Source: Azolla caroliniana (Eukaryota > Plantae > Polypodiophyta). From it: 64,000 bases of DNA. The first letter of the stretch is position 1. Each line of letters starts with the position of its first letter. A program made the position numbers and the translations under genes. Under the pieces are notes generated by a model. The model was not told where the DNA came from. It saw only the letters and a list, made by a program, of their open reading frames with translations, and did not search any database. Below are positions 3,001-64,000 of the stretch, piece by piece. The DNA lies in contig JBHGNT010000047.1 of the NCBI GenBank assembly GCA_043228905.1, positions 1 to 64,000 on the forward strand, given 5' to 3'.

Positions 3001-6000
3001 TCATACCTGGCTCGTGTCATCTCGGATTTTTGTGTTCAAACATGCGACTAGAAGCTAACAATGCTAGCTATGATATGGAATTAAAAAATCAAGATTTTGA
3101 AACTCAAGTCGAGAGACATGACGAAATTAGCAAACATGAGGAGGGAGTTGAGAGAAGCCCTTGAGTAAATTAAAATGTTCATACCTGGCTCGTGTGATAT
3201 CGGATTTTTGTGTTCAAACATGCGAATCAAAGCTAACAACGCTAGCTATGATATGGACTTAAAAAATCAAGATTTTGAAACTCTGGTCGAGAGACATGAC
3301 GAAATTAGCAAATTTGAGGAGTTAGTTGAGAAGAGCCCTTGAGTAAATGAAAATGTTCATACCTGGCTCGTGTGATATCGGATTTTTGTGTTCAAACATG
3401 CGACTAGAAGCTAACAATGCTAGCTATGATATGGAATTAAAAAATCAAGATTTTGAAACTCAAGTCGAGAGACATGACGAAATTAGCAAACATGAGGAGG
3501 GAGTTGAGAGGAGCCCTTGAGTAAATTAAAATGTTCATACCTGGCTCGTGTGATATCGGATTTTTGTGTTCAAACATGCGAATCGAAGCTAACAACGCTA
3601 TCTATGATATGGAATTAAAAAATCAAGATTGTGAAACTCAGGTCGAGAGACGTGACGAAATTACCAAATTTGAGGAGTGAGTTGTGAAGAGCCCTTGAGT
3701 AAATGAAAATGTTCATACCTGGCTCGTGTGATATCGGATGTTTGTGTTCAAACATGCGTATCGAAGCTAACAACACTAGCTATGATATGGAATTAAAAAA
3801 TCAAGATTTTGAAACTCAGGTCGAGAGACATGACGAAATTACCAAATTTGAGGAGGGAGTTGAGGGGAGCCCTTGAGTAAATGAAAATGTTCATACCTGG
3901 CTCGTGTAATATAGGATTTTTGTGTTCAAACATGCCAATCGAAGCTAACAACGCTAGCTCTGATATGGACTTAAAAAATCAAGATTTTGAAACTCGGGTC
4001 GAGAGACATGACGAAATTACCAAATTTGAGGAGTGAGTTGAGAAGAGCCCTTGAGTAAATGGAAATGTTCATACCTGGCTCGTGTAATATCGGATTTTTG
4101 TGTTCAACCATGCGAATCGAAGCTAACAACGCTAGCTATGATATGGAATTCAAAAATCAAGATTTTGAAGCACAGGTCGAGAGACATGACGAAATTAGCA
4201 AACATGAGGAGGGAGTTGAGAGGAGCCCTTGAGTAAATTAAAATGTTCATACCTGGCTCGTGTGATATCGGATTTTTGTGTTCAAACATGCGAATCAAAG
4301 CTAACAACGCTAGCTATGATATGGAATTAAAAAATCAAGATTTTGAAACTCGGGTCGAGAGACATGACGAAATTACCAAATTTGAGAAGTGAGTTGAGAA
4401 GAGCCCTTGAGTAAATGAAAATGTTCATACCTGGCTCGTGTAATATCGGATTTTTGTGTTCAAACATGCGAATCGAAGCTAACAACGCTAGCTATGATAT
4501 GGACTTAAAAAATCAAGATTTTGAAACTCTGGTCGAGAGACATGACGAAATTAGCAAATTTGAGGAGTGAGTTGAGAAGAGCCCTCGAGTAAATGAAAAT
4601 GTTCATACCTGGCTCGTGTGATATCGGATTTTTGTGTTCAAACATGCGAATCGAAGCTAACAACACTACCTATGATATGGAAATAAAAAATCAATATTTT
4701 AAACTCAGGTCGAGAGACATGACGAAATTACCAAATTTGAGGAGTGAGTTGAGAGAAGCCCTTGAGTAAATTAAAATGTTCATACCTGGCTCGTGTAATA
4801 TCGGATTTTTGTGTTCAAACATGCCAATCGAAGCTAACAACCCTAGCTATGATATGGAATTCAAAAATCAAGATTTTGAAACTCGGGTCGAGAGACATGA
4901 CGAAATTACCAGACATGACGAGGGAGTTGAGAGGAGCTCTTGAGTAAATTAAAATGTTCATACCTTGCTCGTGTCATATTGGAATTTTGTGTTCAAACAT
5001 GCGAATCGAAGCTAACAACGCTAGCTATGATATGGACATAATAAATCAAGATTTTGAAACTCTGGTCGAGAGAGATGACGAAATTAGCAAACATGAGCAG
5101 GGAGTTGACAGGAGCCCTTGAGTAAATTAAAATGTTCATACCTGGCTCGTGTAATATCGGATTTTTCTGTGTAAACATGCGAATCGAAGCTAACAACGCT
5201 AGCTATGATATGGAATTAAAAAATCAAGATTTTGAAACTCAGGTCGAGAGACATGACAAAATTACCAAATTTGAGGAGTGAGTTGAGAAGAGCCCTTGAC
5301 TAAATGAAAATGTTCATACCTGGCTCGTGTGATATCGGATTTTTGTGTTCAAACATGCGAATCGAAGCTAACAACGCTAGCTATGATATGGACTTAAAAA
5401 ATCAAGATTTTGAAACTCAGGTCGAGAGACATGACGAAATTACCAGACACGACGAGGGAGTTGAGAGGAGCTCTTGAGTAAATTAAAATGTTCATACCTT
5501 GCTCGTGTCATATTGGAATTTTGTGTTCAAACATGCGAATCGAAGCTAACAACGCTAGCTATGATATGGACATAATAAATCAAGATTTTGAAACTCTGGT
5601 CGAGAGAGATGACGAAATTAGCAAACATGAGCAGGGAGTTGACAGGAGCCCTTGAGTAAATGGAAATGTTCATACCTGGCTCGTGTAATATCGGATTTTT
5701 GTGTTCAACCATGCGAATCGAAGCTAACAACGCTAGCTATGATATGGAATTCAAAAATCAAGATTTTGAAACACAGGTCGAGAGACATGACGAAATTAGC
5801 AAACATGAGCAGGGAGTTGACAGGAGCCCTTGAGTAAATTAAAATGTTCATACCTGGCTCGTGTGATATCGGATTTTTGTGTTCAAACATGCGAATCAAA
5901 GTTAACAACGCTAGCTATGATATGGAATTAAAAAATCAAGATTTTGAAACTCGGGTCGAGAGACATGACGAAATAACCAAATTTGAGAAGTGAGTTGAGA

Positions 6001-21246: not shown

Positions 21247-21835
21247 TGTCGCAATTCCGTGCTCGGCCACAACCGAGGAACTGGATCGATTCACAGAAAA
21301 CGGGAAATACAACAATGCACGAAAAACAATAGAGAGAAGGGTACACTGGATGTTTTACGTGGAAAACCCTAAATGGGAAAAACCACGGGAGTGCAAGACT
21401 CCAACTATCACTATACGCGGGAATGTACAATGGCGAGCTGCAAGGCGACGACCTTGAGCTCACTGTCCTTGCCACAGGCGGCGGTATTACACAGAGGCGT
21501 CGACCTCTTCCTTCCTCTTTCTCTCTCACTCTCTCTCAGCTGCTCTCACTTCGCTCCCTCTTAGTGGAAAACAGAAAAATGAGCAACAACACTAAAACTG
21601 TTTGCCCTAAGTCATATTTATACACATATGACTTTCAGGCTATTTACAAATATAGCTTCAAGGGCCCTTGGCAAACATATTCACAGATATGTCCCCGCAT
21701 CCGGATCTCTCTCCGGGTACATACGGCATCCGGCTCCGTAACCGGGTACTCTTCATCCGGCGGTTCCGTAACAGCCTCCGGGCTTGCCGTCATTCATCTC
21801 CGGACATCCCATCCGGAGGGACCGAAATCCCAACA
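21247..21835 (-). repeat. 3' LTR of copia element 1 (589 bp)
   Basis: Direct repeat of 25951-26567. Minus strand reads TGTTGGGA...GCGACA and follows the PPT. Confidence 0.95.
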
Positions 21836-21847
21836 AACTCCCCCTTC
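21836..21847 (-). other. Polypurine tract of copia element 1
   Basis: Minus strand reads GAAGGGGGAG-TT directly before the 3' LTR, overlapping the pol stop codon. Confidence 0.9.
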
Positions 21848-24800
21848 ACTTCGGCATGGGATGTCTCGCCAACCCGATCCTCTTCCGGCATGCTTCCAGC
21901 TTGTCGGGTGTGAGCACCTTGGTCAGCATATCCGACCCGTTCTCGTCCGTGTGGATCTTCGTCAGCACGAACTCCTTGTCTTCTATCCTTTCCCGGATCC
22001 AGTGGTATCTACGCTGGATGTGTTTCGTCCGGGAATGGTAGGCCGCGTTCTTTGCAAGGTGGATGGCACTCTGACTATCGCAGTAGAGTCGGTACTCCTC
22101 CTGCCGGATACCGAGCTCTCTAACGAAGTCCTTCATCCATATTATTTCCTTGCCGGCTTCAACAGCCGCCATGTACTCCGCCTCCGTGGTTGACAACGCA
22201 ACCGTCTTCTGCAACCTCGACTGCCACGAAACGGCTCCCCCTGCATATGTCATTACATACCCTGATGTAGACCGGCTGGTATCCGCATCAGCCGACATGT
22301 CCGAATCGGTAAATCCATCGAGTTCGGGCTTACCGGAGCCGAATCGGAGGCACATGTTCGAAGTGCCCTTTAAGTATCGGAGTATCCATTTGACCGCGTT
22401 CCAGTGCTCCTTGCCGGGATTACTCATATACCGGCTCACCACTCCGACTGCGTATCCAATGTCCGGTCGGGTACACACCATTGCGTACATCAAGCTCCCG
22501 ACGGCAGAGGCATATGGTATCTTCATCATATCCTCCTTTTCAACTTTTGTCTTGGGACTTTGCTTGCTGGACAACTTGCAGTTTGCCGGGAGTGTTGACC
22601 CGACCGGTCTTGCTTCCGACATGTTGAACCGGTGAAGCACCTTTGTCACGTACTTCTCCTGTGACAGCCACAACTGCTTCTTCTTCCGGTCCCGGATGAT
22701 GTGCATCCCTAGTATTTGCCTCGCCGGACCCAGGTCCTTCATTGAGAAGGTTCGGTGAAGAGCCTTCTTCAGCATCCGTATCTTGACCTGGTCTCGTCCG
22801 ACGATCAACATGTCGTCCACGTATAGGAGGAGTATTAGAAAGTCTCCTCCTTCGTACTTCTTCACAAACACGCAGTGGTCGGACTGCGTTTTGAGGTACC
22901 CTTCGTCGGTCATGAAAGAGTCAAACTTCCGGTACCATTGCCGGGGAGCCTGCTTCAGTCCGTAAAGGCTCTTCTTCAACCGGCATACCAGGTGCTCCTT
23001 CCCTTTCTTCTCGAATCCTTCCGGTTGCTGCATGTAGATCTCTTCATCGAGGTCACCGTGAAGGAATGTCGTCTTCACGTCCATCTGTTCTACCTCGAGG
23101 TCCATGCTTGCCGCTATGCTCAGCACCGTCCGGATGGAGGTCATCTTCACTACCGGGGCAAATATCTCGTCGAAGTCGACGCCCTTCTTCTGCTGAAACC
23201 CCTTCACCACGATCCTGGCTTTGTATCTCGGGGGGTTTCCGGCATCTCCCGGTTTCAGCTTGAACACCCACTTGTTACGGAGTGCCCGTTTTCCTTTCGG
23301 CAGCTCCACAAGTTCATATGTGTGGTTCTCATGCAGGGAATCCATCTCCTCCTGCATGGCACTTAACCACCTGCGGCTATGGGTGTCATGCTTCGCTTCT
23401 TCAAAGCTTTCCGGCTCCCCTTCGTCGGTTAGCAGCACGTGCTCTGGTTCTGGAAATCTCCGGGGGGCCCTTCTCTCTCTTAGAGGATATCTCCTTTCCG
23501 GAGCTTCGGTAACCGGTTCTTCCGATTCTTCTTCATCCGAATCCATTTCGGGATCGGGGCCGGTTCCGGTATTATTTTCATCTTCTTCGGCCGGTTCTGT
23601 TTCTTCACCGTCTTCGGCCGGATCCTCGAGTGCTAACCGGTCCCTTGCCGGTCGGGACTGCTCCTCGTAGAGTTGATCCTCACCGGTCGACTTGGAGCTC
23701 TTCATCTTCTTCTCCGACTCCCAGTCGGCGAGTGTCTTGTCCTCCATGAAGATGATATCTCGACTCCTGAATATCTTCTTGTCGACCGGGTCCCATACTC
23801 GGTAGCCGAACTCGTCGTCGCCGTAACCGAGGAATATGCATGGCCGGGTCTTTGGATCTAGCTTTCCTCTCCGGTCCTTTGCCACATGCACGTATGCGAG
23901 ACACCCGAACACCTTCAGATGCCGGTAGGACACTTCCTTACCGGTCCACACTTTCTGCGGCGTGTCTCCGTCCAACGGTACTGAGGGTGATCTGTTTATC
24001 ACGTATGTCGCCGTCGACATTGCCTCAGCCCAAAACCCCTTGGGTAATTTCGCATGCGCCAGCATACTCCGGACCCTCTCCATTATGGTCCGGTTCATCC
24101 TCTCGGCCAGCCCGTTTAGTTCCGGCGTCTTCGGCACAGTAAACTCGAGCCGGATTCCCTTCGAGCGACAGTACTCCTGGAACTGCCCCCGGTATTCCCC
24201 TCCGTTATCCGCTCGTATCGCTTTCAGCTTCTTGCCGGATTCTCTTTCCACTCTCGCGTGGAGTTCTTTGAAGACGGACAACACTTGGTCCTTTGTCTTC
24301 AACGGTGCCGTCCACAGCTTCCGGCTGTGATCATCAATGAAAGTCACGAAGTACTGGGCTCCGCCATGTGACTTCGTTTCTACCTGACACACATCAGTGT
24401 GCACCAACTCCAATGGTGCGCTACGTCTCGTCGGTGGCCTTGAGTGGAAGGAGGTTCGGTTCTGCTTACCGGCCAGGAAATCGGTGCACTTCTCCAGGTG
24501 CACATGCTTCACTGGAATAAGGTTGTCTTCTGCAAGCCTCTTCATCCCCTTCTCACTCATGTGGCACAGCCTTTTGTGCCACAGCTCACCGGCAGTGTCG
24601 GCTGCCACATTCAGCTCTTCCGGACACAACCAGGCATTCATAAGGTACAGTGTGTTGACTTTCCGGGCCCGAGCCACTATCAGGCTTCCCTTGCTGAACT
24701 TCATTACGCCGTTCCGGATGCTACCTGTGTAACCTTCATCGTCTAGCCTCCCGGCCGAAATCAGGTTCAATCGAACCTCCGGAACGTGTCGGACATCCTT

Positions 24801-25919
24801 CAGTAGCATTTTGCATCCGGTCGGGGTTGTTAACCATACGTCTCCTATGCCGGCAATCCGGCACGTACCTTCATTTCCCATCCGAACGCAGCCATGTTCA
24901 CCGGCTGTGTAGGATGAGAAGTATCTACTTTCCGGGGTCAGGTGGAACGACGCTCCGGAATCGACCACCCAGGTAGTCTCATCGCCGGCAATGTTTAGTT
25001 CACCTTCTTCGGTGATGAGCATGATCTCCTCTTCACTTGCCGCGAGTGCCGTCGTTCCTTTACGGTCCTGCCCTCGCCGATCCGGACCTCTCCGGTCCGT
25101 GGCTCCCCGGTATGCACCGTTTCTCTCCGGTGACTTCTTCGAATCGGTGTCGTCGGCTCCGTTGTCTTTTCGGTAATGCCGACAATTCTTCCGGAAGTGC
25201 CCCGGCTTCCCACAGTGGAAGCATGTGGGTCTTCCTCTTGACTGCGACCGGGTCCCCGACTTCTCCCGTCTTTGCGGACTCCGGTTCCATTGTCTTCCCC
25301 GTTCCGATTCGGTAAGCAGCGCCTTCGAGTCGGAGGCCGGTTCTTTATCTCTCCGACGCGCTTCTTCGTTCAAAATACTTGTCTTTACCGTTTGTAGGGA
25401 CAAGTTATCTTCGGTGCAGGAGGTGCTGAGAGTCACCACCAAGTTCTCCCAGCTGTCCGGCAATGTACACATCAGGATGATGGCTTGCATTGCATCCTCC
25501 AACGGGAACTTGATCGCCGCAAGCTGGTTCACGAATCCCATGAACGTGCTTACGTGTTCCACCATACTCTCGCCGTCCCGGTACTTGAGGTTCACTATCT
25601 TTCTCATCAGGGAGGTCCGGTTCAACGCATTCTTCCTCTCGTAGAGGCCCGACAGCTTCCTCCACATCTCATATGCGTTGGTGTCGTTCGCCACGTGTTG
25701 TAGAACGCTCACGTCGACGTATTGCCGAATGGTTGCAACGGCTTTCCGGTTCAGAAGCCTCCACTCCGTCTCAAGTACCCCCTTGGGTATTTCCGACCTG
25801 TCGATCGGTTCATACAGGTCCCGAACAATGAGCAGATCCTCCATCTTTATCTTCCAGTCGGCATAGTTCTGCGCATTCAGCACCATCATCCCCGGCTGCC
25901 CGCTGCTGCCACCTTCCAT
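21846..25919 (-). CDS. Copia Gag-Pol polyprotein, 1357 aa from the first ATG after the PBS (MEGGSSGQ...)
   Basis: Zinc knuckle CFHCGKPGHFRKNC; protease DSGAS; integrase HTDV / RADNGGEY / AERMNR; RT LKKSLYGLKQAPRQW and YVDD; RNase H DSD / TEAEY / DSQSA / DMLTK. IN-before-RT order defines copia. Confidence 0.96.
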   Translation of the reverse strand: MEGGSSGQPGMMVLNAQNYADWKIKMEDLLIVRDLYEPIDRSEIPKGVLETEWRLLNRKAVATIRQYVDVSVLQHVANDTNAYEMWRKLSGLYERKNALNRTSLMRKIVNLKYRDGESMVEHVSTFMGFVNQLAAIKFPLEDAMQAIILMCTLPDSWENLVVTLSTSCTEDNLSLQTVKTSILNEEARRRDKEPASDSKALLTESERGRQWNRSPQRREKSGTRSQSRGRPTCFHCGKPGHFRKNCRHYRKDNGADDTDSKKSPERNGAYRGATDRRGPDRRGQDRKGTTALAASEEEIMLITEEGELNIAGDETTWVVDSGASFHLTPESRYFSSYTAGEHGCVRMGNEGTCRIAGIGDVWLTTPTGCKMLLKDVRHVPEVRLNLISAGRLDDEGYTGSIRNGVMKFSKGSLIVARARKVNTLYLMNAWLCPEELNVAADTAGELWHKRLCHMSEKGMKRLAEDNLIPVKHVHLEKCTDFLAGKQNRTSFHSRPPTRRSAPLELVHTDVCQVETKSHGGAQYFVTFIDDHSRKLWTAPLKTKDQVLSVFKELHARVERESGKKLKAIRADNGGEYRGQFQEYCRSKGIRLEFTVPKTPELNGLAERMNRTIMERVRSMLAHAKLPKGFWAEAMSTATYVINRSPSVPLDGDTPQKVWTGKEVSYRHLKVFGCLAYVHVAKDRRGKLDPKTRPCIFLGYGDDEFGYRVWDPVDKKIFRSRDIIFMEDKTLADWESEKKMKSSKSTGEDQLYEEQSRPARDRLALEDPAEDGEETEPAEEDENNTGTGPDPEMDSDEEESEEPVTEAPERRYPLRERRAPRRFPEPEHVLLTDEGEPESFEEAKHDTHSRRWLSAMQEEMDSLHENHTYELVELPKGKRALRNKWVFKLKPGDAGNPPRYKARIVVKGFQQKKGVDFDEIFAPVVKMTSIRTVLSIAASMDLEVEQMDVKTTFLHGDLDEEIYMQQPEGFEKKGKEHLVCRLKKSLYGLKQAPRQWYRKFDSFMTDEGYLKTQSDHCVFVKKYEGGDFLILLLYVDDMLIVGRDQVKIRMLKKALHRTFSMKDLGPARQILGMHIIRDRKKKQLWLSQEKYVTKVLHRFNMSEARPVGSTLPANCKLSSKQSPKTKVEKEDMMKIPYASAVGSLMYAMVCTRPDIGYAVGVVSRYMSNPGKEHWNAVKWILRYLKGTSNMCLRFGSGKPELDGFTDSDMSADADTSRSTSGYVMTYAGGAVSWQSRLQKTVALSTTEAEYMAAVEAGKEIIWMKDFVRELGIRQEEYRLYCDSQSAIHLAKNAAYHSRTKHIQRRYHWIRERIEDKEFVLTKIHTDENGSDMLTKVLTPDKLEACRKRIGLARHPMPK

Positions 25920-25935
25920 TTTCTGTGTTACCGTC

Positions 25936-25947
25936 GCTCTGATACCA
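25936..25947 (-). other. Primer-binding site, tRNA-iMet
   Basis: Minus strand TGGTATCAGAGC, 3 nt downstream of the 5' LTR end. Confidence 0.95.
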
Positions 25948-25950
25948 CTT

Positions 25951-26567
25951 TGTCGCAATTCCGTGCTCGGCCACAACCGAGGAACTGGATCGATTCACAG
26001 AAAACGGGAAATACAACAATGCACGAAAAACAATAGAGAGAAGGGTACACTGGATGTTTTACGTGGAAAACCCTAAATGGGAAAAACCACGGGAGTGCAA
26101 GACTCCAACTATCACTATACGCGGGAATGTACAATGGCGAGCTGCAAGGCGACGACCTTGAGCTCACTGTCCTCGCCACAGGCGGCGGTATTACACAGAG
26201 GCGTCGACCTCTTCCTTCCTCTTTCTCTCTCACTCTCTCTCGGCTGCTCTCACTTCGCTCCCTCTTAGTGGAAAACAGAAAAATGAGCAACAACACCAAA
26301 ACTGTTTGCCCTAATTCATATTTATACACATATGACTTTCGGGCTATTTACAAATATAGCTTCAAGGGCCCTTGGCAAACATATTCACAGATATGTCCCC
26401 GTATCCGGATCTCTCTCCGGGTACATACGGCATCCGGCTCCGTAACCGGGGTCTTCAGCATCCGGCTCCGTAACCGGGTACTCTTCATCCGGCGGTTCCG
26501 TAACAGCCTCCGGGCTTGCCGTCATTCATCTCCGGACATCCCATCCGGAGGGACCGAAATCCCAACA
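25951..26567 (-). repeat. 5' LTR of copia element 1 (617 bp)
   Basis: Matches the 3' LTR apart from 6 substitutions (counted by eye) and a 28-bp extra unit at 26451-26478. Confidence 0.95.
26320..26326 (-). promoter_or_regulatory. Putative TATA box (TATAAAT) of the copia 5' LTR
   Basis: Minus-strand TATAAAT, conserved in all three family LTR copies (also 21616-21622 and 60617-60623), downstream of the U3 repeats. Confidence 0.65.
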
Positions 26568-51800: not shown

Positions 51801-53336
51801 TGTTCATACCTCGCTCGTGTGATGTCCGATTTTTGTGTTCAAACATGCGAATCGAAGCTAACAACACTAGCTATGATATGGAATTAAAAAATCGAGATTT
51901 CGAAACTCAGGTCGAGAGACATGAAGAAATTACCAAATTTGAGGAGGGAGTGGAGAAGAGCCCGTTCGGAAATGAAAATGTTCATACCTGGATCGTGTGA
52001 TATCGGATTTCTGTGTTCAAACATGGGAATCGGAGCGAACAACGCTAGCTATGATATGGAATTAAGAAATCAAGATTTTGAAACTCAGGTTGAGAGACAC
52101 GAAGAAATTACCAAATTTGAGGAGGGAGTTGAGTAGGGCGAATGAGTAAATTAAATTGTTCATGCCTTGCTCGTGTGATATCCGATTTCTGTGTTCAAAC
52201 ATGGGAATCGGAGCTAACAACGCTAGCTATGATATGGAATTAAAAAATCAATATTTTGAAACTCAGGTCGAGAGACATGAAGAATTTACCAAATTTGAGG
52301 AGGGAGTTGAGTAGAGTCCTCGAGAAAATTAAAATGTTCATACCTGGCTCGTGTGATATCGGATTTCTGTGTTCAAACATGGAAATCGGTGCTAACAACG
52401 CTAGCTATGATATGGAATTAAAGAATCAAGATTTTGAAACTCAGATCGAGAGACATGACGAAATTACCATATTTGAGGAGGGAGTTGAGTAGAGCCCTTC
52501 AGAAAATTAAAATGTTTATACCTCGTTCGTGTGATACAGGATTTCTGTGTTCAAACATGGGAATCGGAGCTAACAACGGTAGCTATGATATGGAATTAAA
52601 AAATCCAGATTTTGAGACTCAGGTCGAGAGACATGACGAAATTAGCACATTTGAGGAGGGAGTTGAGTAGGGCGAATGAGTAAAGTAAATTGTTCATACC
52701 TCGCTCGTGTTATATCTGATTTTTGTGTTCAAACATGTGAATCAAAGCTAACAACGCTAGCTATGATATGGAATTAAAAAATCAAGATTTTGAAACTCAG
52801 GTCGAGAGACATGACGAAATTACCAAATTTGAGGAGGGAGTTGAGTAGGGCGAATGAGTAAATTAAATTGTTCATACCTCGCTCGTGTGATATCTGATTT
52901 TTGTGTTCAAACATGCGAATCGAAGCTAACAACCCTAGCTATGATATGGAATTAAAAAATCAAGATTTTGAAACTCAGGTCGAGAGACATGAAGAAATTA
53001 CCAAATTTGAGGAGGGAGTTGAGAAGAGCCCTTGAGCGAATTAAAATGTTCATACCTGGCTCGTGTGATATCGGATTTCTGTGTTCAAACATGGGAATCG
53101 GAGCTAACAACGCTAGCTATGATATGGAATTAAAAAATCAAGATTTTGAAACTCAGGTCGAGAGACATGAAGAAATTACCAAATTTGAGGAGGGAGTTGA
53201 GGAGGGCGAATGAGTAAATTAAATTGTTCATACCTCGTTCGTGTGATATCTGATTTTTGTGTTCAAACATGCGAATCGAAGCTAACAACCCTAGCTATGA
53301 TATGGAATTAGAAAATCAAGATTTTGAAACTCAAGA

Positions 53337-56300
53337 TGGAGGATCTTCTGATTGTTCGGGACCTGTACGAACCGATTGACAGGTCGGAAATACCGAAGGG
53401 GGTACTTGAGTCGGAATGGAAACTTCTGAACCGGAAAGCCGTTGCAACCATTCGGCAATACGTCGACGTGAGCGTTCTACAACATGTGGCGAACGACATC
53501 AACGCATATGAGATGTGGCGGAAGCTGTCGGGCCTCTACGAGAGGAAGAATGCGTTGAACCGGACCTCCCTGATGAGGAAGATAGTGAACCTCAAGTACC
53601 GGGACGGCGAGAGTATGGTGGAACACGTAAGCACGTTCATGGGATTCGTGAACCAGCTTGCGGCGATCAAGTTCCCGCTGGAGGATGCAATGCAAGCCAT
53701 CATTCTGATGTGTACATTGCCGGAAAGCTGGGAGAACTTGGTGGTGACTCTCAGCACCTCCTGCACGGAAGATAACTTGTCCCTACAAACGGTAAAGACA
53801 AGTATTTTGAACGAAGAAGCGCGTCGGAGAGATAAAGAACCGGCCTCCGACTCGAAGGCGCTGCTTACCGAATCGGAACGGGGAAGACAATGGAACCGGA
53901 GTCCGCAAAGACGGGAGAAGTCGGGGACCCGGTCGCAGTCAAGAGGAAGACCCACATGCTTCCACTGTGGGAAGCCGGGGCACTTCCGGAAGAATTGTCG
54001 GCATTACCGAAAGGACAACGGAGCCGACGACACCGATTCGAAGAAGTCACCGGAGAGAAACGGTGCATACCGGGGAGCCACGGACCGGAGAGGTCCGGAT
54101 CGGCGAGGGCAGGACCGGAAAGGAACGACGACACTCGCGGCAAGTGAGGAAGAAATCATGCTCATCACCGAAGAAGGTGAACTAAACATTGCCGGCGATG
54201 AGACGACCTGGGTGGTCGATTCCGGAGCATCGTTCCACCTGACCCCGGAGAGAAGATACTTCTCATCCTACACAGTTGGTGAGCATGGCTGTGTTCGGAT
54301 GGGAAATGAAGGTACGTGCCGGATTGCCGGCATAGGAGACGTGTGGTTGACAAGCTCGACCGGATGCAAAATGTTGCTGAAGGATGTCCGACACATTCCG
54401 GAGGTTCGATTGAACCTGATTTAGGCCGGGAGGCTAGACGATGAAGGCTACACAGGTAGCATCCGGAACGGCGTAATGAAGTTCAGCAAGGGGAGCCTGA
54501 TAGTGGCTCGGGCCCGGAAAGTCAACACACTGTACCTTATGAATGCCTGGTTGTGTCCGGAAGAGTTGAACGTGGCAGCCGACACTGCCGGTGAGCTGTG
54601 GCACAAGAGACTGTGCCACATGAGTGAGAAGGGGATGAAGAGGCTTGCAGAAGACAACCTTATTCCAGTGAAGCATGTGCACCTGGAGAAGTGCACCGAT
54701 TGCCTGGCCGGTAAGCAGAACCGAACCTCCTTCCACTCAAGGCCACCGACGAGACGTAGCGCACCATTGGAGTTGGTGCACACTGATGTGTGTCAGGTAG
54801 AAACGAAGTCACATGGCGGAGCCCAGTACTTCGTAACATTCATTGATGATCACAGCCGGAAGCTGTGGACGGCACCGTTGAAGACAAAGGACCAAGTGTT
54901 GTGCGTCTTCAAAGAACTCCACGCGAGAGTGGAAAGGGAATCCGGCAAGAAGCTGAAAGCGATACGAGCGGATAATGGAGGGGAATACCGGGGGCAGTTC
55001 GCGGAGTACTGTCGCTCGAAGGGAATCCGGCTCGAGTTTACTGTGCCGAAGACGCCGGAACTGAACGGGCTGGCCGAGAGGATGAACCGGACCATAATGG
55101 AGAGGGTCCGGAGTATGCTGGCGCATGCGGAATTACCCAAGGGGTTTTGGGCTGAGGCGATGTCAACGGCGACATACGTGATAAACAGATCACCCTCAGT
55201 ACCTTTGGACGGAGACACGCCGCAGAGAGTGTGGACCGGTAGGGAAGTATCCTACCGGCATCTGAAGGTGTTCGGGTGTCTCGCATACGTGCATGTGGCA
55301 AAGGACCGGAGAGGAAAGCTAGATCCAAAGACCCGGCCATGCATATTCCTCGGTTACGGCGATGACGAGTTCGGCTACCGAGTATGGGACCCGGTCGACA
55401 AGAAGATATTCCGGAGTCGTGATATCATCTTCATGGAGAACAAGACACTCACCGACTGGGAGTCGGAGAAGAAGATGAAGAGCTCCAAGTCGACCGGTGA
55501 GGATAAACTCTACGAGGAGCAGTCCCGACCGGCAAGGGACCGGTTAACACTCGAAGATCCGGCCGAAGACGGTGAAGAAACAGAACCGGCCGAAGAAGAT
55601 GAAAATGATACCGGAACCGGCCCCGATCCCGAAATGGATTCGGATGAAGAAGAATCGGAAGAACCGGTTACCGAAGCTCCGGAACGGAGATATCCTCTAA
55701 GAGAGAGAAGGGCTCCCCGGAGATTTCCGGAACCAGAGCACGTGCTGCTAACCGACGAGGGGGAGCCGGAGAGCTTTGAAGAAGCGAAGCATGACACCCA
55801 TAGCCGCAGGTGGTTAAGTGCCATGCAGGAGGAGATGGATTCCCTGCATGAGAACCACACATATGAACTTGTGGAGTTGCCGAAAGGAAAACGGGCACTC
55901 CGTAACAAGTGGGTGTTCAAGCTGAAACCGGGAGATGCCGGAAACCCCCCGAGATACAAAGCCAGGATCGTGGTGAAGGGGTTTCAGCAGAAGAAGGGCG
56001 TCGACTTCGACGAGATATTTGCCCCGGTAGTGAAGATGACCTCCATCCGGACGGTGCTGAGCATAGCGGCAAGCATGGACCTCGAGATAGAACAGATGGA
56101 CGTGAAGACGACATTCCTTCACGGTGACCTCGAAGAAGAGATCTACATGCAGCAACCGGAAGGATTCGAGAAGAAAGGGAAGGAGCACCTGGTATGCCGG
56201 TTGAAGAAGAGCCTTTACGGTCTGAAGCAGGCTCCCCGGCAATGGTACCGGAAGTTCGACACCTTCATGACAGACGAAGGGTACCACAAAACGCAGTCCG

Positions 56301-57080
56301 ATCACTGCGTGTTTGTGAAGAAGTTCGAAGGAGGAGACTTTCTAATACCCCTCCTGTACGTGGACGACATGTTGATCGTCGGACGAGACCAGGTCAAGAT
56401 ACGGATGCTGAAGAAGGCTCTTCACCGAACCTTCTCAATGAAGGACCTGGGTCCGGCGAGGCAAATACTAGGGATGCACATCATCCGGGACCGAAAGAAG
56501 AAGCAGTTGTGGCTGTCACAGGAGAAGTACGTGACAAAGGTGCTTCACCGGTTTAACATGTCGGAAGCAAGACCGGTCGGGTCAACACTCCCGGCAAACT
56601 GCAAGCTGTCTAGCAAGCAGAGCCCCAAGACAAAGGCTGAGAAGGAGGACATGATGAAAGTACCATATGCCTCTGCCGTCGGGAGCTTGATGTACGCAAT
56701 GGTGTGTACCCGACCGGACATAGGATATGCAGTCGGAGTGGTGAGCCGGTACATGAGCAATCCCGGCAAAGAGCATTGGAACGCGGCCAAGTGGATACTC
56801 CGATACCTGAAGGGCACGACAAACGTGTGCCTCCGATTCGGCTCCGGTAAGCCCGAACTCGACGGCTTCACCGATTCGGATATGTCGGCTGATGCAGATA
56901 CCAGCCGGTCCACATCAGGGTATGTGATGACGTATGCAGGGGGAGCTGTTTCATGGCAGTCGAGGCTGCAGAAGACGGTTGCGTTGTCAACCACGGAGGC
57001 GGAGTACATGGCGGCTGTTGAAGCCGGCAAGGAAATAATATGGATGAAGGACTTCATTAGAGAGCTCGGTATCCGGCAGG
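53337..57080 (+). pseudogene. gag-pol pseudogene, 5' part (Gag, PR, IN, RT, start of RNase H)
   Basis: ORFs 53324-54424 and 54476-57088 share one frame and are split by TCG>TAG at 54422-54424. The frame is interrupted after ELGIRQ by the nested element. Confidence 0.94.
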
Positions 57081-57582
57081 TGTTGTAGGTTTTAGGGTTA
57101 GGGTTAAGGATGATGAATGATAAAGATAGACATGGTGGTCATGATGAGGATGATGAAGAGCATGATGATGAGAGATCGTATAGAGAAGCATAGAGAAGCA
57201 TTGCGGGGTGGGGGGTGGTGCCTAGAATGGCTCCACCCCCCTCCCAAGGGGATTCAACGTTGAGGGGAGAGAGAGAGAGAAAGAGGGATGACAAGAGAGA
57301 GATTAGGAGAGAAATGGTTTATTCTTCATTCATTCCCCATAAGGGGTTAAATAGTACAAGAGGGGGTAGTTACAAAGGGGTGTAAGCCCCATAGAGCATT
57401 CATACTGGACACTCACTCACACCTCATCGTATCCCTCCACATGCACACACGTGTGCATGTGTTCACATACATATCAACTCACAATTACATTTATGTTCCC
57501 TACACATATACAACATCATCATGATAATATTCGACCCTCGCTCATCACACTTGACTCTCCGTACAACTCGTACGGGGTAACA
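57081..57582. repeat. Left LTR of nested element (502 bp)
   Basis: Matches 59627-60128 at offset 2546. The only difference seen is TGTTG vs TGTTC at base 5. Confidence 0.95.
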
Positions 57583-57586
57583 CATA

Positions 57587-57602
57587 TGGCACGCCCGTGG
57601 GA
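57587..57602 (+). other. PBS-like site, complementary to tRNA-Arg(UCU)-type 3' end
   Basis: TGGCACGCCCGTGGGA, 4 nt after the LTR. Resembles the recalled complement TGGCACGCCCGGTGGGAC with a 1-nt gap. Confidence 0.75.
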
Positions 57603-59611
57603 AAGTGCGTTGCACGTCGATCCCACATGCCTTGATGATGATATCTCTTCGACCGGAACTTCCATCGGTCCTTTCAACGATCGATTCCCTCGATCGGAGC
57701 GCTTGACTCGATCATCTCCATCGGTCAGCGACTTTTCCGCGACACGAACATTCTCATTCTGTCGTCTTACGAACTTTGGTATCCTCTTTCGGGTCCTTAA
57801 AAATGTTGTGTGCATGTATGTTATTCTTTGTTGATTTTGTGAGTTGTCATGGTCGATCACGTCCATTTCTTTAGGTGGATGAGATTTCAAAATTTCATAG
57901 GTGCCCTTTGATTTTTAAAATTTTCTTATATACCCTCAGGTTTTTACAATTATGTTTGATACCCTCATCTTTCTTCTTTCCTTCTCTTCTTTCCCTCTTC
58001 TTTTCCATTTCTGTTACTACTTCTTTCTTTCTTTCTCGCCTGCTTTCTTCTTCCTCATTCTTTCTTCCTGTTCTTCCTTATTCTTCCGTGTATGCCTTTC
58101 TCTCTCTTCTTTCTGTCTCTTCTTTCTGTTTCTCAGACTACATCATCTTCTTCTTTCTCTTCTTCATTCACCACTGCTATGTCCATTGTCCATTGCTTCC
58201 CATCCTTCTACTCCCTGTCGTTTCCTGTTTTCTTCTTCCTCTTTCTATTTCTCCATCTTCTTCTATGCCTATCGCTTTCTTGCTTCTCTGTTTCTGTTTC
58301 TTCTTATTTTCTTCGTATTTCTTCCTTTGTTTTGACGCATCCCGTCGGCCTCCTGTTAGGTCTGCGCCTGTGGTGGTTGTCGGCTCTTCCGAGGTCTCTG
58401 TCTCTCTATTCATCCACTGGTTGTTGTCCGGCCATCCGTTGTCCGATCGTCGTCCCATTCCGGCCGTTGTTTGGCGGTTCTTTGTCCAGCCCGTCTGGCC
58501 ACTCCGACCACTGTTCGGCTATTCTAGATGCTGCGGTCGCTCCTCGGCCACTGTTTGGCCGTCGTGGCCATCTCCGACCGCTGCTGTCGTCCTTGTCCGG
58601 CAACCTCCATTCCGACGCCGTTCGGCCACTACGACCGCTCTTAGGTCGCTCTTCCGTCTCTGTCGGTGTCTGGTCATCTGTCTATTTCTCTATCTCCGTA
58701 GCGCTTTTGGTATTGATGTCAACGACCCTTCGGTCCCGGACATTCTGTTCATTTGTCCGGCCCATTCCGGTCAGTCTCTGTTTGTCACCATCGCTTTGTG
58801 ATTGGCCGCCTCTATTCAGACGCATATCCCACCGCGACTGTTTGTTCTTTGTCATTGTTTAGGTCGTAGCTCGGTCCGGCGCCATTCAGCCACTCCAACT
58901 GCTCTTCGGTCGCTCTCCGGTCGGAGCTTTTCCGGCTTCACCTCCATCTCTATCTATCTTGGTGCTGTCGACCGCTCTTCCGCTTCTATCCGGTGATACC
59001 GGCTTCCCTATCGTCCCTGTCCGGTGCCTGTGTGCCTTCTGTCCGGCAATGTTGCCCCATGGTCGCCATTGTTAGTCTCGTCCGGTATTCGACCTAGGGT
59101 TTGCTCGTGGTTTTCTGGTGTCTCTGGTCCTCGATGTCTGGTCTGCTTTTGCATCTCCTTCTCCGTCTTCTATGGCCATTCGATGTGAACCAAGTCTGGT
59201 TCTTGCTCCGATTCCGGTTTCGACTCTTTCTGCGTTGCTTCGTCTGGAACCATCTCTCGTGCACTCTCAGCACATCCTGCCGGCCTCCGCTCCACACACT
59301 GCGTCTTTTCCACCGCAGTCTCCTGGTGGGCTTCTCTTACCGGTCGTGCTTGCACCGGTTCTCTTTGCGTCGCTGTTTGTCCAACCGTGCATCTTGCACC
59401 ACGCTTCGAACACGCACATTGTCACTAACCGCATTCGGAAACACGTACATGGACACCAATCGCAACCTTACATAAACACCGTTCCATTCATGAATTCTTT
59501 CATCGCATTGTCATTTCCTGTACTCACACAAATATGTCGCTATGGCCTTCGCTATGGCCTTCATCACCGCGTATCATTCTTTGACTCCGTTTCCAAAGGG
59601 GGGTCGCCGTA

Positions 59612-59621
59612 GTGGTCGCCA
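59612..59621 (-). other. Second PBS-like site, complementary to tRNA-Arg(UCG)-type 3' end
   Basis: Minus strand TGGCGACCAC, 5 nt inside the right LTR. Matches 10 nt of the recalled tRNA end ...GTGGTCG-CCA. Confidence 0.6.
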
Positions 59622-59626
59622 AAATG

Positions 59627-60128
59627 TGTTCTAGGTTTTAGGGTTAGGGTTAAGGATGATGAATGATAAAGATAGACATGGTGGTCATGATGAGGATGAT
59701 GAAGAGCATGATGATGAGAGATCGTATAGAGAAGCATAGAGAAGCATTGCGGGGTGGGGGGTGGTGCCTAGAATGGCTCCACCCCCCTCCCAAGGGGATT
59801 CAACGTTGAGGGGAGAGAGAGAGAGAAAGAGGGATGACAAGAGAGAGATTAGGAGAGAAATGGTTTATTCTTCATTCATTCCCCATAAGGGGTTAAATAG
59901 TACAAGAGGGGGTAGTTACAAAGGGGTGTAAGCCCCATAGAGCATTCATACTGGACACTCACTCACACCTCATCGTATCCCTCCACATGCACACACGTGT
60001 GCATGTGTTCACATACATATCAACTCACAATTACATTTATGTTCCCTACACATATACAACATCATCATGATAATATTCGACCCTCGCTCATCACACTTGA
60101 CTCTCCGTACAACTCGTACGGGGTAACA
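59627..60128. repeat. Right LTR of nested element (502 bp)
   Basis: Direct repeat of 57081-57582, followed by the TSD GCAGG. Confidence 0.95.
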
Positions 60129-60387
60129 GCAGGAGGAGTACCGACTCTACTGCGACAGTCAGAGTGCAATCCACCTTGCGAAGAACGCGGCCTATCACTC
60201 CCGGACGAAGCACATCCAGCGAAGATATCACTGGATCCGGGAAAGGATAGAAGACAAGGAGTTCGTGCTGACGAAGATCCACACGGACGAGAACGGGTCG
60301 GATATGTTGACCAAGGTGCTCACACCCGACAAGCTGGAAGCATGCCGGAAGAGGATCGGATTGGAGAGACATCCTATGCCGAAGTGA
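60129..60387 (+). pseudogene. gag-pol pseudogene, 3' part (RNase H C-terminus)
   Basis: Translates as QEEYRLYCDSQSAIHLAKNAAYHSRTKHIQRRYHWIRE...DMLTKVL...HPMPK*, matching the end of the element 1 ORF. Confidence 0.93.
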
Positions 60388-60397
60388 AGGGGGAGTT

Positions 60398-60661
60398 TGT
60401 TGGGATTACGGTCCCTCCGGATGGGATGGTCGGATGTCCGGAGATGAATGACGACAAGCCCGGTTGCGGTTTCGGAACCGGATGATGAAGACCCCGGCTT
60501 CGGAGCCGGATGACGAATGTACCCGGAGAGAGATCCGGATGCGGGGACATATCTGTGAATATGTTTGCCAAGGGCCCTTGAGGCTATAGTTGTAAATAGC
60601 CCTAAAGTCATATGTGTATAAATATGACTTAGGGCAAACAGTTTTTATGTTGCTACTCATT
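60398..60661 (+). repeat. Partial 3' LTR (U3 portion) of copia element 2
   Basis: Follows PPT GAAGGGGGAG (60386-60395), starts TGTTGGGATT, is homologous to the element 1 LTR and ends about 37 bp after TATAAAT. Confidence 0.9.
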
Positions 60662-63600
60662 ACCAAATTTGAGGAGGGAGTTGACTAGGGCGAATGAGTA
60701 AATTAAATTGTTCATTCCTCGCTGGTGTGATATCGGATTTGTGTGTTCAAACATGCGAATCGAAGCTAACAACGCTAGCTATGATATGGAATTAAAAAAT
60801 CAACATTTTGAAACTCAGGTCGAGAGACATGAAGAAATTACCAAATTTTAAAATTTTCATACCTCGCTCGTGTGATATCGGATTTCTCTGTTCAAACATG
60901 CGAATCGAAGCTAACAACGCTAGCTATGATATGCAATTAAAAAATCAAGATTTTGAAACTCAGGTCGAGAGACATAAAAAAATTACCAAATTTGAGGAGG
61001 GAGTTGAGTAGGGCGAATGAGTAAATTAAATTGTTCATTCCTCGCTGGTGTGATATCGGATTTGTGTGTTCAAACATGCGAATCGAAGCTAACAATGCTA
61101 GCTATGATATGGAATTAAAAAATCAACATTTTGATACTCAGATCGAGAGACATGACGAAATTACCAAATTTGACGACGGAGTCTAGTAGGGCGATTGAGT
61201 AAATTAAATTGTTGATACCTCGCTCGTGTGATATCGGATTTGTGTGTTCAAACATGCGAATCGAAGCTAACAACGCTAGCTATGATATGGAATTAAAAAA
61301 TCAAGATTTTGAAACTCAGGTCGAGAGACATAAAAAAATTACCAAATTTGAGGAGGGAGTTGAGTAGGGCGAATGAGTAAATTAAATTGTTCATTCCTCG
61401 CTGGTGTGATATCGGATTTGTGTGTTCAAACATGCGAATCGAAGCTAACAATGCTAGCTATGATATGGAATTAAAAAATCAAGATTTTGATACTCAGATC
61501 GAGAGACATGATGAAATTACCAAATTTGAGGACGGAGTCTAGTAGGGCGATTGAGTAAATTAAATTGTTCATACCTCGCTCGTGTGATATCGGATTTGTG
61601 TGTTCAAACATGCGAATCGAAGCTAACAACGCTAGCTATGATATGGAATTAAAAAATCAAGATTTTGAAACTCAGGTCAGGAGACATGAAGAAATTACCA
61701 AATTTGAGGAGTGAGTTGAGAAGAGCCCTTGAGTAAATTAAAATGTTCATACCTGGCTCGGGTGATATCGAATTTTTGTGTTCAAACATGCAAATCGAAG
61801 CTAACAACGCTAGCTATGACATGGAATAAAAAAATCAAGATTTTGAAACTCAGGTCGAGAGACATGACGAAAATAGCAAACTTGAGGGGGGAGTTGAGAG
61901 GAGCCCTTGAGTAAATTAAAATGTTCATACCTGGCTCGTGTGATATCAGATTTGTGTCTTCAAACATGCGAATCGAAGCTAACAATGCTAGCTATGATAT
62001 GGAATTAAAAAATCAAGATTTTGATACTCAGATCAAGAGACATGAGGAAATTACCAAAGTTGAGGAGGGAGTTGAGAAGAGCCCTTGAGCAAATTGAAAT
62101 GTTCATACCTGGCTCGTGTGATATCGGATTTCTGTGTTCAAACATGGAAATCGGAGCTAACAACGCTAGCTATGATATGGATTCAAAAAATCAAGATTTT
62201 GAAACTTAGGTCGAGAGACATGAAGAAATTACCAAATTTGAGGAGGGAGTTGAGTAGGGCGAATGAGTAAATTAAATTGTTCATACCTCGCTCGTGTGAT
62301 ATCGGATTTGTCTGTTGAAACATGCGAATCGAAGCTAACAATGCTAGCTATGATATGGAATTAAAAAATCAAGATTTTGAAACTTAGGTCGAGAGACATG
62401 AACAAATTACCAAATTTGAGGAGGGAGTTGAGTAGGGCGAATGAGTAAATTAAATTGTTCATACTTCGCTCGTGTGATATCAGATTTCTCTGTTTAAACA
62501 TGTGAATCGAAGCTAGTAGGGCGATTGAGTAAATTAAGTTGTTCATACCTTGCTCGTGTGATATCAGATTTTTGTGTTTAAACATGCGAAACGAAGCTAA
62601 CAACGCTAGCTATGATATGGAATTAAAAAATCCAGATTTTGAAACTCAGGTCGAGAGACATGACGAAATTACCAAATTTGAGGAGTGAGTTGAGAAGAGC
62701 CCTGGAGTAAATTAAAATGTTCATACCTGGCTCGTGTGATATCGGATTTCTGTGTTCAAACATGCCAATCGAAGCTAACAACGCTAGCTATGATATGGAA
62801 TTAAAAAATCAACATTTTGAAACTCAGGTCGAGAGACATGACGAAATTACCAAATTTGAGGACGGAGTCTAGTAGGGCGATTGAGTAAATTAAGTTGTTC
62901 ATACCTCGCTCGTGTGATATCAGATTTTTGTGTTTAAACATGCGAAACGAAGCTAACAACGCTAGCTATGATATGGAATTAAAAAATCAAAAATTTAAAA
63001 CTTCGGTCGAGAGACATGACATATTTAGCAAATTTGAGGAGGGAGTTGAGTAGGGCGAATGAGTAAATTAAATTGTTTATACCTCGCTCGTGTGATATCG
63101 GATTTCTCTGTTCAAACATGCGAATCGAAGCTAATACCCCTAGCTATGATATGGAATTAAAAAATAAAGATTTTGAAACTCAGGTCGAGAGACATGAGGA
63201 AATTACCAAAGTTGAGGAGGGAGTTGAGAAGAGCCCTTGAGCAAATTGAAATGTTCATACCTGGCTCGTGTGATATCGGATTTCTGTGTTCAAACATGGA
63301 AATCGGAGCTAACAACGCTAGCTATGATATGGATTCAAAAAATCAAGATTTTGAAACTTAGGTCGAGAGACATGAAGAAATTACCAAATTTGAGGAGGGA
63401 GTTGAGTAGGGCGAATGAGTAAATTAAATTGTTCATACCTCGCTCGTGTGATATCGGATTTGTCTGTTGAAACATGCGAATCGAAGCTAACAATGCTAGC
63501 TATGATATGGAATTAAAAAATCAAGATTTTGAAACTGAGGTCGAGAGACATGAACAAATTACCAAATTTGAGGAGGGAGTTGAGTAGGGCGAATGAGTAA

Positions 63601-64000
63601 ATTAAATTGTTCATACTTCGCTCGTGTGATATCAGATTTCTCTGTTTAAACATGTGAATCGAAGTTAACAACGCTAGCTATGATATGGAATGAAAAAATC
63701 AACATTTCGAAACTCAGGTCGAGAGACATGAAGAAATTAGCAAATTTGAGGAGGGTGTTGAGTAGGGCGAATGAGTAAATTAAATTGTTTATACCTCGCT
63801 CTTGTGATATCGGATTTCTGTGTTCAAACATGCGAATCGAAGCTAACAACCCTAGCTATGATATGGAATTAAAAAATCAACATTTTGAAACTCAGGATGA
63901 GAGACATGACGAAATTAGCACATTTGAGGAGGGAGTTGAGTAGGGCGAATGAGTAAATTAAATTGTTCATACCTCGCTCGTGTGATATCCGATTTTTGTG
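60662..64000 (+). repeat. 178-bp satellite array, divergent variant (about 19 monomers)
   Basis: Same monomer with the GAGTAGGGCGAATGAG...AAATTGTTCATACCTCGCTCG variant and several internal deletions. Confidence 0.95.

Follow-up and report, generated by a model that had tools for sequence, protein, structure and literature searches.

A long terminal repeat (LTR) element at positions 57081 to 60128 of a 64,000-nt stretch of the Azolla caroliniana genome (contig JBHGNT010000047.1, positions 1 to 64,000, forward strand; the whole stretch is referred to as the window) was found to carry, at the place of the polypurine tract (PPT), a 40-nt module which, judged by its sequence, derives from tRNA-Arg(UCU). 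The element is very probably a young, recombinant and non-autonomous member of a PPT-less lineage, with its sense strand on the minus strand of the window. As part of this anatomy, its mobilisation in trans by a Ty3/gypsy lineage carrying the same module is considered equally well founded.

A tRNA-derived module in place of the polypurine tract

Past the left LTR, the plus strand of the window reads CATA, followed by TGGCACGCCCGTGGGA (57587-57602; motif 1). On the minus strand, the sequence past the right LTR is CATTT, followed by TGGCGACCAC (59621-59612; motif 2). The core of each of the two motifs is present once in the 64-kb window.

A PPT abutting the 3′ LTR is typical, although not strictly defining, for LTR retrotransposons. 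In this element no purine run abuts either LTR, and the tRNA-derived module takes up the final 40 nt in front of the 3′ LTR. The absence of an LTR-adjacent PPT, which had been pointed out in an earlier note on this DNA, is borne out by the whole family, in which the longest purine run in the 80 nt preceding the LTR has a median length of 5. As a control, a copia element in the same window was inspected and was found to have a canonical initiator methionine tRNA (iMet) primer-binding site (PBS; TGGTATCAGAGC) as well as a canonical PPT (GAAGTGAAGGGGGAG, followed by TT and the LTR). Since the PPT of the copia element is readily visible, its absence from the element is no artefact of inspection.

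The purine run AAAGGGGGG (59595-59603), located 23 nt from the LTR, was considered as a displaced PPT and was rejected, as it is part of a conserved 5′ leader. The loci L023, L080 and L094 hold the same run at an identical distance from the LTR. The spacing is therefore no private insertion, a case that the earlier note had left to be checked.

For the identification of the module, a related locus was informative. ARAGORN predicted a complete tRNA-Arg(UCU) with an encoded CCA at L006:1190-1265, where it occupies the PBS position of a mini element with an interior of only about 480 nt. This tRNA is a fossil of primer-tRNA read-through. The module matches nt 49-58 and 60-76 of the L006 tRNA, CCA included, whereas C66 is absent. 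In sense direction it consists of the 5′ strand of the T-stem and the start of the T-loop, an inserted hairpin (GTGC-AAC-GCAC) and the segment TCCCAC-GGGCGTG-CCA. The hairpin of 13-14 nt is inserted directly after tRNA position 58 (A58). The CCA is located 4 nt before the 3′ LTR in this element and 2 nt before it in most relatives. In L097-type elements, the match between the 13-nt PBS and the tRNA includes C66, and the missing C therefore belongs to the module and not to the tRNA. On this comparison, motif 1 is the antisense view of a tRNA-Arg(UCU)-derived module that occupies the place of the PPT. With sense nt 60-76 of tRNA-Arg(UCU) minus C66, the CCA included, 2-4 nt before a 3′ LTR starting with TGTT, the element is a member of the lineage. 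ARAGORN found no tRNA gene in the window.

The features of the element are listed below with their window coordinates, strand and basis.

57076-57080, unstranded: left copy of the target site duplication (TSD), GCAGG; the other copia copy has the 5-mer once at the homologous point
57081-57582, minus: 3′ LTR in element sense, TGTT...AACA; 501/502 identity to the other LTR, orientation from relatives
57583-57586, minus: 4-nt spacer between the module CCA and the LTR, sense TATG; from the sequence
57587-57626, minus: tRNA-Arg(UCU)-derived module at the PPT position; comparison with the fossil tRNA in L006 and 96-copy alignment
57627-59592, minus: non-coding interior, including a GA-rich sense block at window positions 57960-58340; no credible open reading frame (ORF)
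59593-59611, minus: conserved 5′ leader immediately following the PBS, sense TACGGCGACCCCCCTTTGG, including AAAGGGGGG; leader conserved in sister families
59612-59621, minus: PBS TGGCGACCAC, 10 nt, tRNA-Arg NCG type; same PBS type in L065, match to a tRNA 3′ end
59622-59626, minus: 5-nt spacer between the 5′ LTR and the PBS, sense CATTT; CCTTT in most copies
59627-60128, minus: 5′ LTR in element sense; LTR comparison
60129-60133, unstranded: right copy of the TSD, GCAGG; from the sequence

Relatives and the sense strand

Related loci were collected by scanning metagenome contigs for CA-NN-motif 1, which resulted in at least 120 loci, about five of them bacterial chance matches. Most loci were obtained in this way, with a search pattern that fixed 18 letters of the module and spacer region, including the 3′ strand of the T-stem. 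More than 110 related loci from metagenome assemblies have the module core, and several of them have ORFs for gag, reverse transcriptase (RT), RNase H (RH) and integrase (INT). Among viral contigs, motif 1 gave four chance matches in phage-like contigs, none of them in an LTR context.

In 21 related plant loci, a long ORF was found beside the module on the strand opposite to TGGCACG... The distance between the end of this ORF and the motif ranges between 56 and 365 nt in 19 of these loci and amounts to 452 nt in L012 and 590 nt in L063. Pfam domains for gag, zf-CCHC, RVT_1, RNase H and integrase were identified in L097, L078, L065 and L009. The locus L097 represents a full element, in which the 5′ LTR is followed by CAATT, the PBS TGGCACGCCCGGT, gag-pol (1752 aa), an extra ORF (1177 aa), the sense motif ending in CCA, GG and the 3′ LTR. 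PBS and module are thus at opposite ends of the element. In L065, the module, the LTR, the PBS TGGCGACCACG and a gag...RT ORF follow each other on one strand.

The layout of the lineage is gag, protease (PR), RT, RH and INT, followed by an extra ORF of approximately 1,000-1,200 aa, the module and the 3′ LTR. No Pfam match was found for the extra ORF between integrase and module. For the extra ORF of L097, only seven homologues were present in a set of 5.8 billion proteins, all of them from European Nucleotide Archive (ENA) metagenome assemblies. The ORF is located at L097:142-3672 (minus strand), L125:5990-9025 and L126:536-3472, and was also found in L020, L060, L076 and L085.

No credible ORF could be identified in the 2,044-bp interior of the window element, and its orientation was therefore taken from the relatives. 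Without a gag-pol of its own, the element is a non-autonomous derivative. Long interior ORFs on the plus strand were rejected as stop-poor, CT-rich artefacts, and interior ORFs on the minus strand do not exceed 123 aa and are of low complexity. In the relatives, gag-pol runs from the PBS (TGGCGACCAC or UCU type) to motif 1, which is therefore the sense copy of a tRNA end before the 3′ LTR. By this collinearity, the sense strand of the element is the minus strand of the window. The interior is purine-rich on the minus strand, in agreement with this orientation, and the sense strands of the copia copies in the window are likewise purine-rich.

Conservation of the module

An alignment of 96 unique copies was used to analyze the conservation of the module. 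Two-sided changes were identified in the inner hairpin, with UA in 62 and GC in 29 copies at one pair and GC in 59 and AU in 32 copies at another. The inner hairpin is paired in 92-96% of cases, compared to 17-60% in slid-partner controls. Four versions of its stem were found, namely GTGC/GCAC, GGAC/GTCC, GTAC/GTAC and GGGC/GCCC. The window element has this covarying hairpin after position 58 as well. Covariation is confined to the inserted hairpin, and the tRNA-derived segments of the module are invariant. The T-stem 5′ strand is paired in 70-78% at three of five pairs, and RNAalifold recovered the inner hairpin alone.

As the search pattern fixed the module core in most loci, further relatives were chosen by protein, using the extra ORF of L097. 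L125 and L126 are the only homologues of this ORF with downstream sequence. Their identity is 44% and 41%, respectively, and L126 originates from a different assembly series. In both loci, the identical 17-nt core was found about 100 nt past the stop codon, with the C66 loss and the junction CCA-GG-TGTT.

In read contigs of two species, the depth of the module is at least as high as that of the LTR, and the depth of the interior is 100- to 500-fold lower. Among the variants listed from read contigs, none lies inside the module. The module is also retained in the non-coding window element. Only the LTRs, the PBS, the leader and the module are common to this element and the coding relatives, and the module therefore looks like a required cis signal. 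The comparison of copies suggests that the module is under constraint across the lineage, including relatives in which the adjacent ORF has diverged to 41-44% identity.

Primer-binding site and leader

Motif 2 (TGGCGACCAC) matches human tRNA-Arg UCG/CCG over the final 10 nt of the tRNA, and likewise the final 10 nt of an 18-nt, CCA-ended small RNA from wheat. It lies 5 nt past the 5′ LTR, and the tRNA match refers to these human and wheat sequences. By position and tRNA match, motif 2 is a true PBS. The two motifs had been assigned in the earlier note to the 3′ ends of two tRNA-Arg isoacceptors, UCU and UCG. For motif 1, the UCU assignment is supported by the L006 fossil, and for motif 2 the assignment agrees with human UCG/CCG and the wheat small RNA.

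The leader TACGGCGACCCCCCTTTGG follows TGGCGACCAC in the window element, L023, L080 and L094. The same leader was also found behind a different 10-nt PBS, TGGCACGCCC, in L013, L021, L029, L057, L068, L119 and L124. One leader behind two PBS cores means that the PBS was exchanged between tRNA-Arg species within one family group.

Priming of the two DNA strands

Minus-strand DNA is very probably primed in the usual way by a tRNA-Arg of the NCG type on the 10-nt PBS (59612-59621). For the plus strand, the left LTR end can be defined only if the primer stops at a constant position by U3 (the LTR part next to the module), and the CCA, with its fixed distance, is the only conserved feature there. 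The module therefore probably sets the plus-strand primer, whose 3′-OH would be provided by the A of the CCA. A role in pairing between PBS and module is excluded, since the two derive from different tRNAs here.

Two versions of plus-strand priming were considered. Preferred, albeit tentatively, is a version in cis, in which the genomic RNA copy of the module itself may prime the plus strand. After minus-strand synthesis, the RNase H of the element would cut the genomic RNA just past the CCA; the enzyme would in any case have to cut precisely at the junction of tRNA CCA and DNA when the minus-strand primer is removed. The covarying hairpin would refold and thereby limit or position the RNA/DNA hybrid, the genomic RNA copy would then prime the plus strand, and integrase would trim the spacer nucleotides at both ends. 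With spacers of 4 nt at the module and 5 nt at the PBS, integrase would have to trim 4-5 nt per end. Priming in cis would account for covariation at the RNA level and for the tolerated loss of C66. It would also preserve a rule, as to our knowledge the plus-strand primers of all described retroelements derive from the element's own RNA.

Several observations weigh against this interpretation. For a GC-rich, non-purine RNA/DNA hybrid, no RNase H resistance is known. The tRNA identity is strictly kept in unpaired T-loop letters, in L126 even in letters of the variable region, which would be expected from pairing with an external tRNA. The fold of the single module sequence is not better than that of shuffled sequences (z = -1.22). 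In addition, apart from L125 and L126 and, in part, the reads, the conservation of the core is subject to bias from the search pattern.

Somewhat less likely is priming in trans. In this version, the minus-strand cDNA of the module would be bound by a host tRNA-Arg(UCU) or by the 18-nt fragment from its 3′ end, and the bound RNA would prime the plus strand, so that both strands would be tRNA-primed. For the duplex that the tRNA would form with this cDNA (11 bp, one bulge, 6 bp), the predicted free energy is -33.4 kcal/mol, compared to -18.8 kcal/mol for the 10-nt PBS. The restriction of covariation to the inserted hairpin, with invariant tRNA-derived segments, would fit such pairing, as would the placement of the hairpin exactly after A58. 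Position 58 is commonly 1-methyladenosine (m1A) in mature tRNAs, which is unable to pair. The same tRNA is also already selected as primer in relatives with a UCU-type PBS such as L097. However, the conserved loss of C66 weakens pairing with the tRNA, yet it is kept even in the loci that were selected by protein. Lineages with an NCG-type PBS, including the element analyzed here, would need two tRNA species per particle, whereas the genomic RNA fragment is already annealed with a perfect match. Furthermore, the use of a host tRNA for the plus strand is not known to us from any retroelement.

It is rather unlikely that the module is not the plus-strand origin at all. In that case it would serve in packaging, dimerisation, strand transfer or the binding of a tRNA-recognising protein, or would be a tolerated template-switch fossil, and unspecific RNase H fragments would provide the start of plus strands. 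A template switch onto a tRNA during minus-strand synthesis could explain where the module is located, why there is a scar at A58 and how C66 was lost. The incomplete pairing of the T-stem 5′ strand (70-78% at three of five pairs) would also be in line with a module that is not the plus-strand origin. A defined left LTR end, however, needs a fixed primer end by U3, and the distance between CCA and LTR is mostly 2 nt and 4 nt here. Moreover, the module is kept in non-coding elements that retain little else, and its core is identical although the adjacent ORF is down to 41-44% identity.

An element in plus sense, with motif 1 as PBS and a purine run by the right LTR as PPT, is highly improbable. 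Motif 1 reads as a good PBS, and position 59625 is a G in the majority of reads, so that AAAAGG abuts the right LTR on the plus strand in most copies. The orientation is nevertheless the opposite one in every relative with ORFs, and in sense orientation AAAAGG is the spacer that follows the LTR, which varies between CATTT, CCTTT and CTTTT across copies. The purine bias of the interior on the minus strand, like that of the sense strands of the copia copies, also stands against a plus-sense element.

Replication from transcripts of either strand, with a PBS at whichever end is the 5′ end, had been proposed in the earlier note together with symmetric sites and is not supported and more improbable still, for it has in its favour the mirror-like look of the two junctions alone, whereas the sites differ in kind (a 10-nt PBS with a conserved leader and a 40-nt structured tRNA-derived module) and the autonomous relatives code on one strand only, their gag-pol always running from the PBS to motif 1.

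Comparison with known systems

Canonical Ty3/gypsy elements such as yeast Ty3 share with the element the TG..CA LTRs, the 5-bp TSD, the tRNA-complementary PBS and, in the autonomous relatives, the order gag-PR-RT-RH-INT. In Ty3, a polypurine RNA of 12 nt, located immediately upstream of U3, serves as the start of the plus strand (PMC5371799). Here, the purine tract is replaced by a copy of the tRNA-Arg(UCU) 3′ end with CCA.

In the bipartite PBS of Ty3 and Ty1, too, another tRNA-related segment is situated by U3, close to the genomic RNA's 3′ end. In Ty3, this segment is the complement of the primer tRNA and aids minus-strand initiation (PMC5371799). The segment found here is not of this type: it corresponds to the tRNA in sense, terminates in CCA, abuts the LTR and derives from a different tRNA than the PBS.

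The Helenus elements, which are TRIMs (terminal-repeat retrotransposons in miniature), are likewise small non-autonomous LTR retrotransposons with a tRNA-derived sequence. In Helenus, the tRNA-like sequence is located inside the LTR and is read as a promoter, and both PBS and PPT are retained (PMC10886601). The element described here does not belong to this group, since its tRNA piece is internal, 3′-partial and CCA-ended and stands in place of the PPT, and since, in contrast to the very small TRIMs with their short LTRs, it is 3,048 bp in size with LTRs of 502 bp.

Within the lineage, the read-through fossil in L006 shows the same tRNA-Arg(UCU) with CCA retro-copied in an element. The fossil is antisense, located at the PBS and a by-product of plus-strand synthesis, whereas the module is in sense, located at the other end and conserved across the lineage. 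A tRNA-like CCA end also marks a start point for a reverse transcriptase in the Neurospora Mauriceville retroplasmids and in the 'genomic tag' idea; in those cases the CCA end forms the template's 3′ terminus, opposite to which cDNA synthesis starts. Either version of plus-strand priming would also be relevant to long-standing proposals in which the origin of reverse transcription is connected with tRNA-like CCA ends.

The element has a tRNA-Arg PBS in common with Tat/Ogre and other non-chromovirus plant gypsy elements, and its relatives also share with them an extra ORF that follows pol and precedes the 3′ LTR. The Tat/Ogre lineages are marked by an archaeal-type RNase H domain in pol (PMC6317226). 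No Pfam match to such a domain was found in the polyproteins of L097 and L078, which matched only RT_RNaseH and RT_RNaseH_2, and the element itself has no pol. The Tat/Ogre-type affiliation suggested in the earlier note is thus not supported.

The same survey of plant LTR elements did not analyze PPTs and therefore neither describes nor excludes the present layout (PMC6317226). In the open-access literature, no description of a PPT-less lineage with a copy of a tRNA end was found, which agrees with the earlier statement that no such family was known; novelty is not proven thereby. The PPT is treated as universal in retroviruses and LTR retrotransposons and is sought by annotation tools, whereas here it is absent from a lineage that is diverse and was active recently. 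Annotation of LTR elements based on the PPT will mis-orient or reject such elements. Either mechanism would be new, whether the second strand is primed by a host tRNA or by a piece of genomic RNA that a tRNA-tuned RNase H has cut. If the less likely version in trans were true, the lineage and the non-coding elements that depend on it would be the first retroelements known with tRNA primers for both strands, and with two tRNA-Arg species in the present case. The element represents a natural minimal vector. Two natural barcodes, the loss of C66 and the insertion of the hairpin, would allow primer remnants of the host tRNA to be told from those of the genomic copy.

Insertion site and recombinant origin

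The element has a total length of 3,048 bp with an interior of 2,044 bp. Its LTRs are direct repeats of 502 bp each with the termini TGTT...AACA, i.e. with the usual TG...CA ends, and are identical at 501 of 502 positions, the sole difference being G/C at position 5. It is flanked by the perfect 5-bp TSD GCAGG. The near-identical LTRs, the perfect TSD and the tRNA-Arg motifs at both junctions had been described before and were confirmed in the sequence, where both motifs start with TGG. The recent mobility proposed on these grounds is supported by the LTR identity and the perfect TSD.

The insertion point is located within the RNase H-coding part of the right-hand copia in the window. The left-hand copia (approximately 21.2-26.6 kb, minus strand) could be aligned across the insertion point with a 5-bp overlap and therefore provides a paralogous empty site, with the 5-mer GCAGG present once. 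The reads yielded contig joints 57075>60129. The element was furthermore found in contigs from public runs of four organisms, originating from 10 studies.

Over sense positions 225-2159, the element shows 93-94% identity to L080, L043 and L023. A second block (sense 2469-3048), made up of the final 80 nt of the interior with the module and the complete 3′ LTR, shows 97% identity to L094. The similarity to the L080 type ends at sense position 2159 and returns only at LTR position 225. By these similarity blocks, the element is a recombinant. An inverted interior or a head-to-head chimera was ruled out, as the blocks of LTR plus flank are collinear with relatives on both sides.

Among the 96 unique relatives, the spacer between CCA and LTR was TG in 42, GG in 38 and TATG in 10 copies, and all copies except those with TATG have a length of 2 nt. 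In some copies this spacer has one extra A after 57583.

The LTR end adjoining the PBS, which is the LTR start in window coordinates, has plant-telomere-like TTTAGGG/TTAGGG units (57088-57108 and 59634-59654). Each LTR also includes a 40-nt, G/C-rich imperfect palindrome (57206-57245 and 59752-59791), one arm of which resembles the LTR end of the sister families with the PBS TGGCACGCCC. Contigs of the type interior-LTR-interior, in which LTRs are shared between elements, were found in L094:1-5306 and also in L023, L062 and L065. These are either real tandem arrays or the result of an assembly collapse through the repeat. Polyadenylated RNA reads (run X21) match only a GAT-rich LTR stretch of approximately 30 nt (57140-57171 and 59686-59717), and 99% of them continue into unlike sequence. 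The matches are probably due to a cellular transcript with a similar repeat and not to expression of the element.

Sequence context in the window

Nearly the whole window is filled by a 178-bp tandem satellite (1-21200, 26600-53300 and 60700-64000). Approximately 284 copies were counted, which are mostly 90-97% identical to the reference copy, with a few down to about 65%, and have a GC content of 0.38. The satellite looks like a centromere-type array that was invaded by LTR elements.

The array is interrupted by two GC-rich copia elements. The first (21247-26567, minus strand) is complete, with an intact ORF of 1376 aa (21846-25976) and LTRs of approximately 600 bp that are 94% identical. The second copy (53333-60661) is without a 5′ LTR and hosts the nested element. 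The contig depth suggests that this copia family is very abundant.

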